The notes under the pieces are model-generated. The model was not told where the DNA came from. It saw only the letters and a program-made list of their open reading frames with translations, and made no database searches. From contig NC_068982.1 in NCBI RefSeq assembly GCF_001194135.2, positions 104,660,991-104,724,990 on the forward strand: DNA of 64,000 bases, given 5' to 3'. Both the position numbers and the translations under genes were made by a program. This DNA comes from Octopus bimaculoides. Taxonomy: Eukaryota. Below are positions 20,242 through 29,952 of the stretch, piece after piece (position 1 is the stretch's first letter; each line of letters begins with the position of its first letter).

Positions 20242-20354
20242 TTATTCAGGATTCTGTATATATTGGGGCTGAACTTTGGCTACTTTACGTTTTTCTTTTA
20301 TTAAGGTATGTGGACACTGCATTTCCTTCCAGCTGATGGGTACCATAGGATAAC
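20242..20354 (-). CDS. EXOSC1: EXOSC1 exon 8, terminal (zinc-ribbon region)
   Basis: ttttttttag| acceptor, phase 1; encodes YPMVPISWKEMQCPHTLIKEKRKVAKVQPQYIQNPE*. Confidence 0.96.
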
Positions 20355-23300
20355 CTAAAAAAAAACAATGGCCTAAGATGATTCATATATTTACAACTAG
20401 AGGATAAATGATTCTGACAATCCATAATACAGGAGGGTTTTCTTTTTCTTCATCACTATTCATATTCTTTCTATTTCTGATTTAATATATTCTTAAATAA
20501 GTTGGGATGAAGTGGAAAGTTATAAAGGAAAAAATTTAAAGCTTCTAAAGTTCTGAAGCACTGCAGTATTTCATGTTAAGGAGAGGGAGATCAATATGAA
20601 TGAAACAAATCAAGGAAACCAGAGTAGAGGCAGCTCATAATCAACCAGAAGCATAGAGCAGAGGCTACCGCAGTAGCTACAGAATAGACAAAGAGAAGTA
20701 CAAGACATCTATGAACCAGAGGTTGGAGCTGATGACTCAGTCATTTAAATGGCTTTTCTTTGGTGATTTATTTCTATTTAAAAAATCTTATTCTATAATA
20801 AAGTCTAAACAACATCCACTCTCTCAGGAAATAAATTATTCTCCTGGTGGAATAGCCAAGAGTAGTATATTGCTTTTCAATCTCCTTTCAGCTGTATAAA
20901 AGGAAAGCAAAGTGGGCTTCAATAGTATTAAGAAATAGTAAGCTAAACTAGTGTAAAGTGTCTAGTCAGTAACTTTGCTGTCTGCCACGAGTGTTCAACT
21001 TAAAGAAAATACTGATTAAACTATACTGGGATGGGGGTGGTTACATAAAAAAAAGAATAATTTAAACACTATACCTGCTTCACTGGTTGCGACTACTACT
21101 CCTAGTTCATTTTCAGCTGTGGTCAACAGATATGAATGTGCATCTCCCAGTGAGAGATAATCAAGTTAAGGATACATTAGCAGATATTCATTCACAAAAT
21201 CAAGTTATGATTACAAGACATCGCTAAAGACTTACAATTTCAAGAAAGTGATTCTAAGAAGACTCTTGAAGTAGTTTCCTGTAACCCTCTGGACTCATAA
21301 AAGGTTTTGAACTCAGTATTGCAATCTCATGATGTCCAAATACAAAGTTCATCACTGATTATAGTAGTGACCTGTACTTCTTTATTGTTAAGTGGACTAT
21401 ACCTGGAAGAAAGTTAAGTTTCTTTACTGCCAACCTTCACCTGTTTCCTAATAAGATAGTATTTCCTCATGACCAGACATATTTTTCATGGAAAACTGGA
21501 AACAAACAACATTGCTTGTATGACAGTAGTGCTTACTTACAATCATCACAAGATATCAAGACAGGGACACATATATGAAGGCTTTCTTTCAGTTACTGTC
21601 TTCCAAATCCACTCGCAGGACTTTGGTTGAACTGAGGATATAATAGGACAAGGAGCTCGGTAGAGACATTGAACCCAAGACCACATGGTTGGGAAGCAAG
21701 CTTCTTAGCCATACCTGCACCTACACATTTGTTTTCCCTGCTGGTATGGATTGGATGGTTTGACCAGAGAGGTGCACCAGGCTCCAGTCTAACTTGGTAT
21801 GGTTTCTAAGGCTGGATGCACTTCCTAATACCAACCACTGCTTTTTATGTGGCATCAGTACAGGACTCTTGCAGGCCAATCCTCTTCACCAGGGGATGCA
21901 GCCATAACACTTCTGCTGTGAAGTATAGGCCTTCTTGAGTACGATAAGGCACCAGGTATCTCAGTCCTTTGTCATCTCGTCTGAAAGGTTCAGCATTCTG
22001 AGGTCATCCCATGTCTTCCTGGGTCTCCATCTCCCATGTGTTTCATCAACTTTGAGAGATCAGCACTTTATGGAGCTGTTGCCATCCATCCACATCACAT
22101 GACCAAATGCATTTTATGCTTTGCATGAAAACTGCTGAGGTATAGACAGTGATAGCTGTTGATATTTCCTTGTCAATAAATCATTCAGTAGCTCTGCACA
22201 AGTAGAATGAAAAGTCTTACTTGAAAACAGGAAAGCGTTCGTGACAAAGAGCACATTCAGCTATAAAAACAATGCTTCTATAAATTGTAATAAAATGTAT
22301 TCATCTAACCCATGCTAGCAGGGAACAACAAAAGAAGATAACCAATGACAGAGTATATTAAATCATTTAAAATATTATGTATTATAAAGAAAAGGATACA
22401 ACTTTAGCTACAATGATATCACCAGGGCGGAAACATTGATACATTTCAACCTAGAAAGGAATATAAATGTTAGAAATGGAACATATAAGAAGTTTTTCTT
22501 CAATTCTGGAGATTAATCAACCACCTCCCTAATGAAAATTGGATATGTCAGAATAATTCACTTAAATAAGTTTTAAAATATCAGTGGTAGTATCATGATT
22601 TTAATTAATGATTATATGACATTCAAAACATTTTTAAGAGGCTGAAATGGGGTTCCTCTGAAGGACCTCTACTATAACTTTGATCAACAGGGTATGTAGC
22701 TCGGAGATCAGGTAGATTCTCCAAGTCAACCCACTACTTTTCCACATTGAGAGGTTACAGTTTCAGTATTACAAATATGGTCAGAATATCGCAAGAAAAA
22801 AATCACAAGACATTCTTCGAGTTGAGTCAACCAACAGATCACAAGCAAGACGGTTGAATAATATCTGTAGGCTCAGTTGGTCATGCTTGAGAATCCATCA
22901 GGAAATTTAATGACAGTAACTTCTGAGAGGATTCTATGGAGGAGGTACCCGAAGACGATCCTCCTAAGGATAGTGAGCAGTGAGAATAGATGGACAGATA
23001 GATTTTTAAATAATCATGTTTTATAAAAATATATTTGATAACCAGATATAGACTCAAATCAGAAAGTTGATTTACTAAGAACACAATTTAAACCATCACA
23101 AAAAGAGACAAAGAGAAATTCGGTCACCTACTTTGTCTTTCTCAGTAGCTTTCACATCTTCTTTCCTGTCAAAATTAGAGAAAAACTAATGAAATATCAG
23201 ATAGAAACATCCCAGCTATGAATCATTTTAAACTATTCAATAATTAAGAACCAATAACAATAATGTTCTAACAGTACCAGTGGAAATTCCATGATTATTT

Positions 23301-26300
23301 TGAAAATTGTATGATGAAATTGCATTTTTCTGAAACATTTGATTCTTGAGAATATGTGAAAATTCACATAGGGGCAATTAATCAATCAATCTATCTATCA
23401 TATTCTACTTACATTTCTGTCAATGTATGTATCTGTTTATAATAACAATACAAACATTTAAACCAAATAACTAAAAAAAAAAGAAATAATTAAAAAAATC
23501 TAAATAATTTCAGTGCCCCAGCCTTTGGGCTACTACACATGAAAAGGTATAAGTAACATCCACAGCTATTTGCTAAGGTTATTTCACTTTAATTTAACTA
23601 TGTATCAATATACCTAGCCAGTCATCTTTCTATCTCCTATCTGTCAATGAATATATCTATCCACAATATTCTTCTTTAACCTCTCAGCACAAACACACAC
23701 ACACTTTCTCTCTCTCTTCATTTCTTCCTTGAACTAACCATTTGACAGCATCTTAGTGTAATAACTATTACTTTACCCCCTACTTCACATCGTTAAACTT
23801 CTCTCCTTCCTTTTCTCTCTCTTCAGCTAACCACATGACAGCGTAACGCATTTTGACCTTAGCATATTAATATATAGATTCTCATAAGACACAATTCAGT
23901 TTCAATACTGCATGCAATAAAAGTAATGGTTACAATTATTCACATTTCATTCGAAGTTGCACTTAGAAATTTCATTGCTTTTATCAGGGACACAGTACAG
24001 TGCCAATAAGAAATGAATTCTTATATTCTCAAACCAGATAGCAAATATCATATCTCCTTTCCTTGCTCTTTTCTGTCTTGCAAGTTACTTGGCAACCTTG
24101 TTAGTGCTGATGGCATGATTAATGAACCCAATACACACTATAAAGTGATTGGCATTAGAAAGGGCAACCAGCCATAGAAACCATATCAAAACTGACAAGG
24201 AACACCACACTACAGCCCTGTTACTCACCAAATCCTTTCAAATTGTTCGGCCATGCAAGCATGGAAAACAGGTGTTAAATGATGATGATCTTGCTAATAG
24301 CTAATTTTATTAAAAAATTGTTGTCATTAAAACGTAAATGTCAAGATATATCCATACACCACACAATCCAATAAGGCAAAACTGCAAATTACATCTCCAA
24401 GAATGAGATATGACCTAATTTATAGAATTCTTAGCCAGGAATAAATAAATTCTCTTTTGAAATCTAGTCAAAGAGAAAAACAGAGTTAAGCTTTCATTTT
24501 GGAGCAAACAAAAGAGCCTCTATGTAGTTGCCTGACCTGCAAACAATAGCAGATGAATTTCTCCCAAACCACATCCTAAAGTTTTTAAGAGAGAAAGGAA
24601 ATTAGATAATGTAGTCCAGGATACACTAGACCTGATAGTCATGGACTGTATCTTTTTTTTTTTATTGTAGGTCTTGTCAATCAAGGCTAAGCAGTTAAGT
24701 ATCTTGTATATCATACTATAAAAATATTTAAATATTAAGGGTAAGAATCCTGTTTTCTACATAACAGAAACTGGGTAATATTTTCATGACAGATAAATTC
24801 ATATTTGATTAAGAGATATTTACTTGGAAACAAGTTCTGTTAGGTTGCCAATGATCTATCATAAATTTCTAGGAATTAAGACTGTCATACACAAATTGAA
24901 TCCATCTTCCTAACTTTGCTGCAATTGTTACTTAAATATACAAACATAAACTTGATGCAACATTCTCAGGGTGCTACATAAGACTTAACACATACATCTA
25001 GCACTTCCTGATGAATATGCAAATAATGCAGGATATATTCTTTCTATTGATTTGTTCCGATTGCAAGTCGCTTCCATGTATTTGTCTATATACCTTCATG
25101 TCATATGTCAGATCCTATCCAACCCAAGTCAGTATGGAGGATGGATCTTAAATGATAAACAAATATGAATTGGTACTATTTAAGATATTAAACCAAGTGA
25201 AGTAAATAAAATTAAAAAATAGAAATATATTTTCTTTCAGAATCATCAACTTACCGTATCATTCCTCTAAATGATTCACGTAATCTAATTTTTCCAACAT
25301 TCATTATAGAACACTTACAAAATCGAGGGTTCACATTAGTTATCTGATAAAAAAAATAAAAAAAATCATATATATGGTTATAGAAATAAATATGCGTCTG
25401 TCTATGTGTACAAAAGAAAGAAAAAGATATTCAATATTTATTAAAATTTTAAGTTTCATTGTTGCTACTTTGAAATTTTCTTTCCAAGGAACAGTAAACT
25501 TAGGAAGAGCAACAGAAGGCAGATTTTATTTTGGATATGCATTGTCTCATTTACTTTTAATTAAAAATAACAAAACAAATTTATGATATAATGCTAACTG
25601 CCATGTATCTCTTCAGAAGCAAGAAACCTGCCCTTGCCTCCTCTTTCATAACACTTGTTGGATCCACTCAAACGATCTAACCCATACCAGCATGAAAGGA
25701 CATTAAATGATGATGGTGATGATAGAATGTTTAAGGACATTTTTACCTTTGCTGTAACTAGTGCATCAACTGATGGCACAATATTTTCTGTTTTAGTTGT
25801 GCATACTTCCACCAATGTCTACAAAAAAAAATTTTTGGAAAATCAGCATTTTCAAAAATAATATATTGTGTATATTCATGTGTCTTAAATTCAAAGTTTA
25901 CATCTGAAAGCTTTGTCTTTGTATAAAATGTTAAGGAGTATTAACCACAATAAGATATGACAGCTATAAACACCAAATAATGTGAACTAGCTTGAAAATT
26001 TGATTCTACTTCATAGATTTGGTATGCAAGAAGGCTTACTACTATTCTACAGTACATGTATACATGACTCCCACACACACACACAGAGCTATATAGTTAA
26101 GTAATTAACTATCAACCTAATTTTGATAAGCATAAAGCTTACTGCTGAACTGAAAAGTAATATATTTTTGTCTTAATTTGATTGAAAATTAAATGAATGA
26201 GATAAAGCTTCTGAAGGTTTCTGACAAAATAAAAACAGGTATCTAAGAACATTTGTATTAAATGCGCTCATAATCTGGTAGCAATGTTCAGCTATCACTG

Positions 26301-28820
26301 TATTAGCTTTTAAGATTTCAAACTGGACATGACTTGATGTAATCAATTTTAGGAAAGTACAGCATGAGAATTATGAATTAACTACAAAGATCTTGATATA
26401 ACTATAACAGATATTATGAACACCAATTCGAGACAAACATACTCCTTAATATGAAAATAGGAACTACAAACACTGTAATACAATCAGTAACGCAATTATC
26501 CTACAAGTAATAGAGACTTGGTTGGAGTCACACCCGTAAGCTAACAGCTCTTTTCTATTCTATATTGTGCCTATCAGGTACAATAAGACACAGCAGATAA
26601 ATACTTAATAATGTAAAAGGGTGTTGGGTAGAATAGATTTGAAGACATATATATATACACATGTACTAAAGCTTCATTCTGTTGCTACAAGTATTTTATT
26701 GTTAGCTGTAAAACATTAGTTGCAATATTTTTTGCATCCTTCAACTTACAAGGCAATACAACACTTATGAAAAACACAGAACTGGCAAAAGAAAAACAAA
26801 ATGATTAATCATTAAAGTATAACTTACTTTATCTTCAGTGGTTTCTGTATGAAGGAAACCTGCTAGGCTTGAATAAATATAACCATTTCGGATGTAAGTC
26901 CCATTTCCACTACATTTATCATCAGTTAGTTGACAAAGCTTTTGCCCTAAAAATCAATATACATCTGGATCTTTACATATTTCAAATACACAAGCATATT
27001 TTAACACCACTAGAAACAGTTTGTTTACTTAGTACTAAAGTATATTTGCTATAATAAAAGAGAGAGAGAGAGATTAAGCTAGAAGTTTAAAGAAGGGAAT
27101 TATTACTTCTTGGCAACATATCATTTCTCATTCCATGCAAAAAGCTGGCTATTAGCAAGTGTAAGATTAATAATAATAATTATTAATTTAATTCCATTTT
27201 CCATCCTGGCATGGGTTGGATGACTTGACAAGAACTGGCCAGAGGCTGCTACAGTCATATATGCTGATAGCAAAAGATTTGCATTTGGCTACAAGAGGTT
27301 TTCTTGTTTTATTGTGATCAATGCTACAGCCAAGTGCCATATAGTGAAAGGACCTACTTCATCGATATCTCATTGAGCCAAGAGGCACCAACAAAATTTG
27401 AACTTATTAAGGAAGTTAATATGTGATACCCATCAGTTCCAAAAGACCCATTATTGATGGAAGAGATCAATCTACTAGGAACCCAGGATTGGACATCTCT
27501 CATTGAAGGATTCCTTGCATTCAACTCACTGGGGTATTATCTGAGTTCTCTATCTGGCCAGCATACCGCAGCTAGCGGACCTCCCACTTAGTGGTCAGAA
27601 CTAAATCTTGTTTCACAACCTCTCACCTTCAGGGCCTGGAACACCTGCACTCTCCGGGACAAGAGTGACATTAATCGACCAGAATGACATACAGCCCTCG
27701 TCTGCAAGAAACTTGCTCACTTCAACATCAACATGACGGCCTTGAGCAAGACTAGGCTTCTTGGAGAAGGCAGCATCAGAGAAGCTGGTTCCAAATACAC
27801 CATCTTTTGGAAGGGGAAGAATCTTAATGAACCACGCATCCATGGAGTTGGCCTTGCCATCAAAACGCAAGTTGTGGACCAACACAGACTCATCCCAACT
27901 ACCGTCAGTGAGCACCTGATGACTTCAGATCACACTCATTTGGAACCAATTCCTTACGCTGATCTCTGTGTATGTCCCTACCCTCACATCTGAAGATGAC
28001 ATCAAGGCTTCATTCTACAACCTGCTGGACTGCACCATCCAGACAGTCCCCACACATGACAAACTCGTCGTGTTGGGGAACTTTAACGGCAGAGTCGGCA
28101 GTGACTATTGTCTGTGGAATGGCATTCTTGGCCATCACAGCATTGGGAAATGCAATGGCAATGGCCAGCTCCTTCTGGGTCTTTGCACCAAGCAAGAACT
28201 TGTCATCACCAACTCCCTACCCAACAAAAAACAAACTGGAAACACCCACGGTCTAAACACTGACACATCTTCAACTATGTCCTGACATGATCTAGGGACA
28301 GACAAGATGTACGCATCAACTGCTCCATGCCTGGTGCAGATGACTGCTGGATGGATCACTGCCTTCTTATTTTTCACCTTGACATCAAGATCTGCTGCCC
28401 ACCAAAGTGGGTCTCAGCAAACATCCCTTGCTGACACTTTGACTGCGCCAAACTCTGGGACTCACGGGCATCCCAAGACTTCAAGGAATCCATTGAGAGA
28501 CACCCAATGGACCTCCCAGAGCCAACCTCCATTGAGGATCGCTGGATCAGCTTTCATGAAGCCATGACTGCTGCGGCCGAGGAAACAATTGGCTTTACCT
28601 GGAAGAAGGACCAAGACTGGTTTGACAAGAATGTCGGATCTTGGGAATTTTCCGAAAGTCCTCTCCCCACAAATTACTTTATAGTCGTAATGTATGCAGT
28701 TTCAAAGGTATTTCTATAAAATTTCATTGAAAAACCCATTTTCCTAAAAGTTATGAGGGAAAAACTTGAATTTTGTGACTTTTCCGAAGTCCTCTCAGCA
28801 CCCTCCCGTTGCTTTGCGCG

Positions 28821-28853
<33 letters not shown>

Positions 28854-29952
28854 CATATTCGTTTCCTACACATTGTTTTACACCCATTCCAGTATATTTT
28901 GGGAGATTTTCATTTCCGGGTCAGGATGTAAACATTAACCCAAATGTCTTTATAATCGTAATCTATGCTGTTTGAAAGGTATTTATATAAAATTTCATTA
29001 AAAAAAATAGAACCTTTTTTCCTAAAAGTTATGAGGGAAAAACTCGGATCTTGAGAATCTTCCGAAGTCCTCTTCCCCACCGCCGTTGTTTTCCACGCGA
29101 TTTTGTTTTCATATTCGTTTCCAGGTAATATTGCAAACATGAAGTATTATGCCCTTTTTTTTTCTTAATGTTACGTCGCCAATACAGCGCTTTGCTCCAG
29201 TTACTTGCCCTGAACCACAGAACTGATCATTGACCACAGAGTATTAAAATGATCACATTGTCCATAAATCTTTCAATATCTACTCATGTTTATCACTTGC
29301 TCTTCTCTCTCTATCCTCTCCTTGCACAACAAATGTTTTGTTTACGACTTTTACTCATTTCACATTTACCACCATCGAAACGCGTTTTCAGAAAATTTCA
29401 TAATTGGAATAAAATTGCACTAAAACAGGCAAAAGTGTAAAGTCATTTGACTTCAGTCCTTTTTTCACTCCTTCTTTTTCTAAATTAAGAAATAATGCTG
29501 TCTTCAAAAAGTTGTTTAGACATTGATGTTCAGAGATGAGTGTTGCAGTCACATTCATGTTAGATAACCAAGACATGTAGTATAGAACTGTTCAATTTCA
29601 TGAAAAACACGTGCTATTTATACAATAAGAATAAATGAAGTTGAAATTTTGACATAAAAAAAAATAAAATCTAAATTAGAGAATATCATAAATTAATAAG
29701 TTATAGTAAAGTTCTGAAAATATTAATAAAGAAATACAAGGTTCAGGTTTAAAACAGGATGAAGGAATCTAGGCATTCCTATTTATATTTTAAATGTTTA
29801 AGAAGCATTAAAATGAAATTTAAATTGCAGTTTAAATAAAAGTAGTATTTTAATATAGATAGTAAAAGAATATATTGTAGATACACAAAGCTTCATATAT
29901 AATTAGAAATAATCGGTTACTCACCAGGTAAACATATCCCTGACTTCAACAT
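20242..29952 (-). CDS. EXOSC1: Exosome complex component CSL4 (EXOSC1), complete spliced gene: 8 coding exons, 588 nt, 195 aa
   Basis: Exons 29952-29925, 26946-26828, 25818-25747, 25343-25255, 23165-23132, 22450-22400, 21156-21075 and 20354-20242 join in phase without stops. Protein: MLKSGICLPGQKLCQLTDDKCSGNGTYIRNGYIYSSLAGFLHTETTEDKTLVEVCTTKTENIVPSVDALVTAKITNVNPRFCKCSIMNVGKIRLRESFRGMIRKEDVKATEKDKVEMYQCFRPGDIIVAKVLSLGDAHSYLLTTAENELGVVVATSEAGYPMVPISWKEMQCPHTLIKEKRKVAKVQPQYIQNPE. Csl4 motifs recognised from memory: GTY.R.GYIYSSLAG, FRG.IRKEDV.ATEKDKVE, FRPGDI..AKV.SLGD, MVPISW.EMQCP.T..KE.RKVA. Confidence 0.97.
21075..21156 (-). CDS. EXOSC1: EXOSC1 exon 7 (82 nt; 5' boundary at a non-AG acceptor)
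   Basis: Encodes LSLGDAHSYLLTTAENELGVVVATSEA-G with a G|gtatag donor. An in-frame TAA at 21168-21166 limits the start, and no AG lies between that stop and the conserved SLGD. Confidence 0.9.
21157..22399 (-). other. EXOSC1: U12-type (minor spliceosome) intron 6 of EXOSC1, apparently GT-AT
   Basis: 5' splice site GTATCCTTT (22399-22391). Branch point TCCTTAAC (21172-21165) lies 9-16 nt from the inferred 3' end TAT|CTC. Confidence 0.88.
22400..22450 (-). CDS. EXOSC1: EXOSC1 exon 6 (51 nt)
   Basis: cctttctag| acceptor; encodes VEMYQCFRPGDIIVAKV; followed by the U12-type donor GTATCCTTT. Confidence 0.96.
23132..23165 (-). CDS. EXOSC1: EXOSC1 exon 5 (34 nt)
   Basis: ttttgacag| acceptor and AAA|gtaggt donor; encodes KEDVKATEKDK. 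Confidence 0.96.
25255..25343 (-). CDS. EXOSC1: EXOSC1 exon 4 (S1 domain)
   Basis: tttttatcag| acceptor and CG|gtaagt donor; 89 nt; encodes ITNVNPRFCKCSIMNVGKIRLRESFRGMI-R. Confidence 0.96.
25747..25818 (-). CDS. EXOSC1: EXOSC1 exon 3
   Basis: ttttgtag| acceptor and AAG|gtaaaa donor; encodes TLVEVCTTKTENIVPSVDALVTAK. Confidence 0.93.
26828..26946 (-). CDS. EXOSC1: EXOSC1 exon 2
   Basis: tttttag| acceptor and AAA|gtaagt donor; encodes QKLCQLTDDKCSGNGTYIRNGYIYSSLAGFLHTETTEDK. Confidence 0.95.
27615..28633 (+). mobile_element. RTE-clade LINE fragment: APE endonuclease region, frameshifted and 3'-truncated
   Basis: FRAWNTCTLRD, ALSKTRLLGEGSIRE, YTIFWKG, HGVGLAIK, SVYVPTL, KLVVLGNFNGRVG, GKCNGNGQLLLGLC...LVITNS and a linker DWFD, spread over ORFs 27733, 27968 and 28507. 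Confidence 0.93.
28634..29122. repeat. Complex direct repeat (two ~180-bp copies plus one partial copy)
   Basis: 28677-28866 and 28948-29122 share ctttat..cgtaat.tatgc.gttt.aaaggtattt...ttttcctaaaagttatgagggaaaaact...ttccgaagtcctct...catattcgtttcc; partial copy at 28634-28670. Confidence 0.9.
29925..29952 (-). CDS. EXOSC1: EXOSC1 exon 1, coding part (MLKSGICLP-G)
   Basis: caacATG start context and a G|gtgagt donor, phase 1. Confidence 0.9.

Follow-up and report, generated by a model that had tools for sequence, protein, structure and literature searches.

The EXOSC1 locus and the splice signals of intron 6

The window, by which we mean the whole 64,000-nucleotide stretch of Octopus bimaculoides DNA analysed here, is 100% identical across 8.5 kb to chromosome CM046602.1 of O. 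bimaculoides assembly GCA_001194135.2. Using tblastn with human EXOSC1, we placed the EXOSC1/CSL4 coding region on the minus strand at 20242..29952, in eight coding exons. Exons 1-4 lie at 29952-29925, 26946-26828, 25818-25747 and 25343-25255, and exons 5-8 at 23165-23132, 22450-22400, 21156-21075 and 20354-20242, the last including the stop codon. Exon 6 encodes VEMYQCFRPGDIIVAKV and ends with the codons GCT AAA GTT. Exon 7 opens with CTC TCA CTG GGA GAT GCA, encodes LSLGDAHSYLLTTAENELGVVVATSEA(G), and is closed by a GTATAG donor at 21074. The protein contains the Pfam domains PF14382 (ECR1_N) and PF10447 (EXOSC1, S1/zinc-ribbon-like), and its identity to the listed metazoan CSL4 proteins is 56-83% (~57-60% for the vertebrate ones); domain content and CSL4 orthology identify it as the EXOSC1/CSL4 cap subunit of the exosome.

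When the eight exons are joined with an AT end for intron 6, they give 588 nt and a 195-aa protein, identical to the RefSeq entries XP_029658035.1 (O. sinensis) and XP_014788727.1 (O. bimaculoides isoform X2). This is the product that the earlier note had expected from splicing after TAT, which keeps phase 0. The current O. bimaculoides RefSeq protein, XP_052834509.1 (228 aa), has a different first exon and an unchanged AKV/LSLGD junction (a slash marks exon-intron or exon-exon junctions throughout). Given these three models, the NCBI pipeline already annotates the AT junction in two species.

EXOSC1 has two alternative first coding exons on the minus strand, 29140-29014 versus 29952-29925. 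The one with MLKSGICLPG, which leads to the 195-aa isoform, resembles the CSL4 N-termini of other animals; the one with MFAILPGNEYENK...FRKKG, which leads to the 228-aa XP_052834509.1, has no similarity to other CSL4 N-termini. A convergent neighbour on the plus strand (below ~19787) encodes a 734-aa product with no Pfam hit on record and ends ~450 nt downstream of the EXOSC1 stop codon. Rfam and tRNA scans of the 64-kb window returned no matches.

Six of the seven EXOSC1 introns are GT-AG introns with U2-type donors. The sole exception is intron 6 (21157..22399, minus strand), a 1243-nt, phase-0, U12-type intron with the termini GT...AT. Its 5' splice site GTATCCTTT (22391..22399, minus) directly follows the last codon of exon 6, and its branch-point sequence TCCTTAAC lies at 21165..21172 (minus). 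These correspond to the U12 donor consensus /RTATCCTTT and to the branch-site consensus TCCTTRAY at ~10-20 nt from the 3' end; both are perfect matches, located exactly at the exon boundaries, and both motifs had been pointed out in the earlier note. The intron ends TTGATTAT, with A at 21158 and T at 21157 (minus) as its non-canonical terminal dinucleotide, and exon 7 begins at 21156; the longer minus-strand context is ...AATGTATCCTTAACTTGATTAT/CTC TCA CTG GGA GAT GCA. The presumed branch A is 21166, the second A of TCCTTAAC, from which it is 9 nt to the last intron base and 10 nt to the first base of exon 7. The 10-11 nt given in the earlier note presuppose branching at the first A, a position at which the other three octopods described below have G.

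Minor introns require neither a pyrimidine tract nor U2AF, and the U11/U12 di-snRNP recognises their 5' splice site and branch site together. Intron 6 has no pyrimidine tract: within its last 40 nt, pyrimidine runs reach 5 nt at most, as they do in intron 1, compared with 8-9 nt in the remaining five introns. Across the 64-kb window, U12 motifs are not above chance level, with GTATCCTTT found once (0.97 expected) and TCCTTRAY found 14 times (12.5 expected). What is non-random is the exact placement of these motifs at boundaries fixed by protein homology, together with their conservation in orthologues from three phyla. We infer that intron 6 probably depends on the minor spliceosome. Exon 6 and intron 6 both end in T, which leaves one ambiguity: a TG...TA intron shifted by one base would yield the same mRNA. 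GT...AT is the sensible reading of the two, since the conserved /GTATCCTTT donor favours a cut in front of the G.

The branch site is embedded in GTATCCTTAAC (21165-21175, minus), where a U12 5'-splice-site-like GTATCCTT overlaps the branch-point sequence. The G of GTATCCTT is found in three Octopus species and is absent in Argonauta (TTATCCTTGAC) and in cuttlefish (GAATCCTTAAT). The overlap is probably due to chance, the two consensus sequences sharing TCCTT.

Where the 3' junction falls

The earlier note had observed that no AG separates the branch site from the SLGD codons at the start of exon 7, and this is correct; the nearest AG upstream is ~70 nt off. Any acceptor further upstream is blocked, as that note had also argued, because it would bring in a stop from inside the branch site: read in the frame of exon 7, TCCTTAAC contains TAA, and the other octopods have TGA there. 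On the other side, an AC and an AG lie 7 and 13 nt into exon 7, which puts them 16 and 22 nt away from the branch A. From the GTATCCTTT donor, splicing after CAC (21150) or GAG (21144) shifts the frame and runs into TGA within 9 codons, in agreement with the earlier statement that the AC of CTCAC would frameshift. An alternative in-frame AT at 21159, three bases upstream of the annotated end, would be just 6 nt away from the branch A, and Argonauta has no AT there. Within the permitted window, the site after TAT is the only one that keeps the frame.

We also enumerated donor/acceptor pairs. The donors covered 20 nt before and 24 nt after the end of exon 6, and the acceptors 60 nt before and 39 nt after the start of exon 7. 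A total of 627 pairs preserved the frame and were free of stops, and none of these 627 combined canonical termini with retention of the conserved DIIVAKV-LSLGD segment. The few pairs with canonical termini were all AT-AC, and each deletes or replaces residues of FRPGDIIVAKV-LSLGD, a block conserved from cnidarians to vertebrates.

Exon 7 of Octopus and Argonauta differs at 11 positions, all of them third-position and synonymous, with 0 non-synonymous changes; the second codon, for example, is TCA in O. bimaculoides and TCC in Argonauta. In exon 6, which is identical in three Octopus species, eight of the nine codons changed between Octopus and Argonauta are synonymous. The synonymous-only change of exon 7 between two AT-ended lineages argues that the frame starting at CTC is translated and under purifying selection. 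A protein search with the C-terminal 92 aa returned no transcript-derived cephalopod fragments spanning the junction, and the spliced-junction sequence had 0 matches in metagenome contigs. The predicted junction after TAT is supported by protein homology, by selection on the frame and by the RefSeq models.

An AT-AC-like donor, ATATCATTG, is present inside exon 6 (22419-22411, minus) and pairs with the AC of CTCTCAC (21151-21150). The product of this pair is in frame, 9 aa shorter, and lacks DIIVAKVLSL; the pair is not kept in Argonauta. It could give rise to a minor by-product isoform in Octopus.

Intron 6 in octopods and other animals

We compared the orthologous loci of three further octopods and one cuttlefish and extracted the intron ends. 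The 5' end is GTATCCTTT in all of them. The 3' end is TCCTTAACTTGATTAT/CTC in O. bimaculoides, TCCTTGACTTGATTAT/CTC in both O. sinensis and O. vulgaris, TCCTTGACTTATATAT/CTC in Argonauta hians, and TCCTTAATTTTTCTCAG/TTG in the cuttlefish Acanthosepion pharaonis. The penultimate A is invariant in the alignment, and the last base is T in 4/4 octopods and G in cuttlefish, limpet and catfish. The genomic GT start and AT end recur in four octopod assemblies (GCA_001194135.2, GCA_006345805.1, GCA_951406725.2 and GCA_054771915.1), and the flanking bases vary among them (TTGATTAT versus TTATATAT at the intron end, TAAC versus TGAC in the branch site). Because four independent assemblies agree on the terminal AT while neighbouring bases differ, the AT is not a shared artefact.

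Beyond the cephalopods, U12-type GT-AG introns interrupt the gene at this phase-0 codon boundary in the limpet Lottia gigantea (98 nt; GTATCCTTT...TTCCTTGACAAATGTTTATCAG/) and in the catfish Silurus meridionalis (GTATCCTTT...CCCTTGACCCCTGCGCTCAG/). Thus GTATCCTTT stands at this codon boundary in six other species (O. sinensis, O. vulgaris, Argonauta, Acanthosepion, Lottia and Silurus), and in cuttlefish, Lottia and catfish it is followed by a branch-point sequence and a terminal CAG at the same phase-0 position. The branch site is TCCTTGAC in the other three octopods and in Lottia, TCCTTAAT in cuttlefish and CCCTTGAC in catfish, and the branch A lies 9 nt from the last intron base in octopods, 10 in cuttlefish, 14 in Lottia and 13 in catfish. 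Lingula has the donor GTATCCTTG, and its acceptor falls in an assembly gap. The Nematostella vectensis orthologue (2656-2790) has no intron at AKV/SLGD, the two exons being contiguous, so the U12 intron was either gained in bilaterians or lost in this cnidarian. The alignment across cephalopods, limpet and catfish that the earlier note had proposed shows an orthologous intron that is U12-type throughout and ends in AT only in octopods.

In human EXOSC1, the intron between exons 7 and 8 is a U12-type GT-AG intron, confirmed with a minigene (PMC10853781). It is retained upon removal of the minor-spliceosome factors ZCRB1 or DDX59 (PMC12095793), and the EXOSC1 U12 intron is affected in SMN-deficient mouse spinal cord (PMC8848931). 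The human and mouse intron thus resides in the orthologous gene and is of the same type. As judged from the catfish orthologue, the vertebrate intron occupies the same AKV/(I/L)SLGD phase-0 position; it ends in AG, which in catfish is at 13 nt from the branch A, whereas the octopod intron ends in AT at 9 nt. The suggestion in the earlier note that intron 6 could make exosome assembly sensitive to U11/U12 activity is reasonable, such sensitivity having been shown for human EXOSC1; it applies to any U12 intron of EXOSC1, and nothing in it is specific to the AT end.

Taken together, these orthologues indicate that intron 6 is a U12 intron of old bilaterian origin that at first ended in AG. Since the cuttlefish, limpet, catfish and human introns are GT-AG, the change ran from AG to AT in the octopod lineage, after the octopod-decapodiform split and before the split of Octopus and Argonauta.

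Several public gene models depart from the RefSeq junction here. The O. vulgaris and Argonauta hians proteins CAI9717169.1 and GAB1604809.1 (174 aa each) skip 21 residues, and the UniProt O. bimaculoides entry A0A0L8FLQ2 (136 aa) and a 169-aa entry run past the donor into the intron (AKVVSFSL*). In these models, the non-canonical 3' end seems to have led the annotation astray.

Interpretation of the AT end

We consider it very probable that intron 6 is an ancient bilaterian U12 intron in which the terminal G became T in octopods after their split from cuttlefish and squid, giving a GT-AT intron. The central claim of the earlier note, that this is a natural GT-AT minor intron and not an error, is upheld by the four assemblies, the RefSeq junctions, the U12-type orthologues, the selection on the frame and the pair enumeration. 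The octopod ancestor would have fixed the terminal T, which has apparently been kept since then in a seemingly single-copy, essential exosome gene.

Introns of this kind are on record. Four human and three mouse GT-AT U12 introns have been catalogued, DEADC1 and SLC24A6 being GT-AT in both species, and U12 introns switch frequently between canonical and non-canonical ends (PMC1557818). In the mutational experiments that Sheth et al. summarise, the combinations GT-AG and AT-AC were the most efficient, and AT-AN and GT-AT were productive as well (PMC1557818). According to one account, distance from the branch point is the main factor in the choice of a U12 3' site, and 11-13 nt is optimal (PMC3584512); the 9-10 nt of intron 6 are at or just below that optimum.

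In the mechanism that we favour, the U11/U12 di-snRNP would recognise /GTATCCTTT and TCCTTRAC jointly, and 3' cleavage would be set mainly by the short distance from the branch A (9-10 nt) and not by an AG and a pyrimidine tract. Use of the junction after TAT would restore phase 0 and yield the full 195-aa exosome cap subunit. The G-to-T change was probably tolerated, as a neutral or slightly deleterious one, for two reasons: in introns that begin with G, the second step of U12 splicing can proceed with a terminal U, and the permitted window upstream contains no AG to compete with the site. The likely cost would be reduced efficiency, perhaps with a share of splicing going to the AC or AG inside exon 7, so that part of the transcripts could carry frameshifted products.

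Several other explanations need to be weighed against this one. If the true last base were G, intron 6 would be an ordinary U12 GT-AG intron like its cuttlefish, limpet and catfish orthologues, and an error at a single base in base calling or assembly would be enough to hide this; however, T is present in four octopod genomes that were sequenced and assembled separately, with flanking substitutions that show their independence, and the probability of such an error is next to nil. A true T could still be undone before splicing if RNA editing restored a canonical site, and cephalopods edit RNA heavily. In humans, A-to-I editing repairs some non-canonical sites, from AA to AG and from AT to GT (PMC4176328). 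The odd base here, however, is a U, which A-to-I editing cannot turn into G, and editing of the penultimate A would destroy an invariant base; we see hardly any chance that editing is the answer. Removal of intron 6 by the major (U2) spliceosome, as a non-canonical U2-type GT-AT intron, has precedent in rare introns such as that of DGCR2 (PMC1557818). We nevertheless regard it as highly improbable. The donor, gtt/GTATCC, does not have the features of a U2 donor, as G is missing at both -1 and +5; the pyrimidine tract is absent; a perfect U12 donor and branch site are conserved between catfish and octopus; and experiments have shown the human orthologue to be U12-type.

The annotated junction would be wrong if most transcripts used another 3' site, which could be the AC at 21151-21150, the AG at 21145-21144, or the ATATCATTG (22419)-AC 21150 pair. 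U12 3' site choice is error-prone (PMC3584512), the AC and AG are within 16 and 22 nt of the branch A, joining 22419 to 21150 keeps the frame and brings in no stop, and the two non-RefSeq models of O. vulgaris and Argonauta skip residues here. Yet the AC and AG shift the frame when used with the GTATCCTTT donor, and the AT-AC-like pair would cost the protein DIIVAKVLSL, a segment whose conservation extends from cnidarians to vertebrates; both sites of the pair are unconserved in Argonauta (GATATTATC and CTCTCCC). Codons 1-5 of exon 7, moreover, evolve synonymously (TCA to TCC; TTG TCA TTG in cuttlefish) and so are translated. A different main site is quite improbable. A further reading accepts the GT-AT intron and gives it a role: the AT end would be a selected throttle on CSL4 supply, with inefficient or regulated removal of the intron and with retention or cryptic AC/AG use leading to non-productive transcripts, or else the octopod minor spliceosome would be generally relaxed on the last base. 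We think this unlikely, and prefer the tolerated G-to-T change described above.

The closest known systems are the mammalian GT-AT U12 introns of DEADC1 and SLC24A6 (PMC1557818), which share with intron 6 the U12 GT donor, the branch site near the 3' end, the terminal AT, and the conservation of the non-canonical end between species. They reside in other genes and another phylum, and in the octopod case outgroups reveal both which way the change went (AG to AT) and between which splits of the phylogeny it falls. The AT-AN ('A-type') minor introns (AT-AA, AT-AT, AT-AG), described in PMC1557818 and in a pan-eukaryotic survey, show the same relaxed last base. These begin with A, whereas the octopus intron begins with G and so belongs to the G-type class, in which last-base variants are rarer. 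Our literature search found no paper mentioning octopus EXOSC1 intron 6.

On genomic and comparative evidence, intron 6 is a real example of the rare, already catalogued GT-AT type, not a new kind of intron. It opens no new question, since GT-AT U12 introns have been described before and EXOSC1 is known to depend on the minor spliceosome, and it would not surprise a specialist. Its value is as an annotation and evolutionary example: a clean, dated natural case of a canonical U12 intron turning into a non-canonical subtype in an essential gene, which supports the view that the 3' sites of minor introns are set by position and not by the last base. It is also of practical use to annotators, as several public gene models break at this intron.

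Among the cephalopods compared, the orthologous intron measures between 347 nt (cuttlefish) and 1681 nt (O. vulgaris). Within intron 6 of O. bimaculoides, ~77 nt (~21763-21839) have ~79% identity to two further places in the O. sinensis locus, one of them reversed, which suggests that this stretch is an interspersed repeat.
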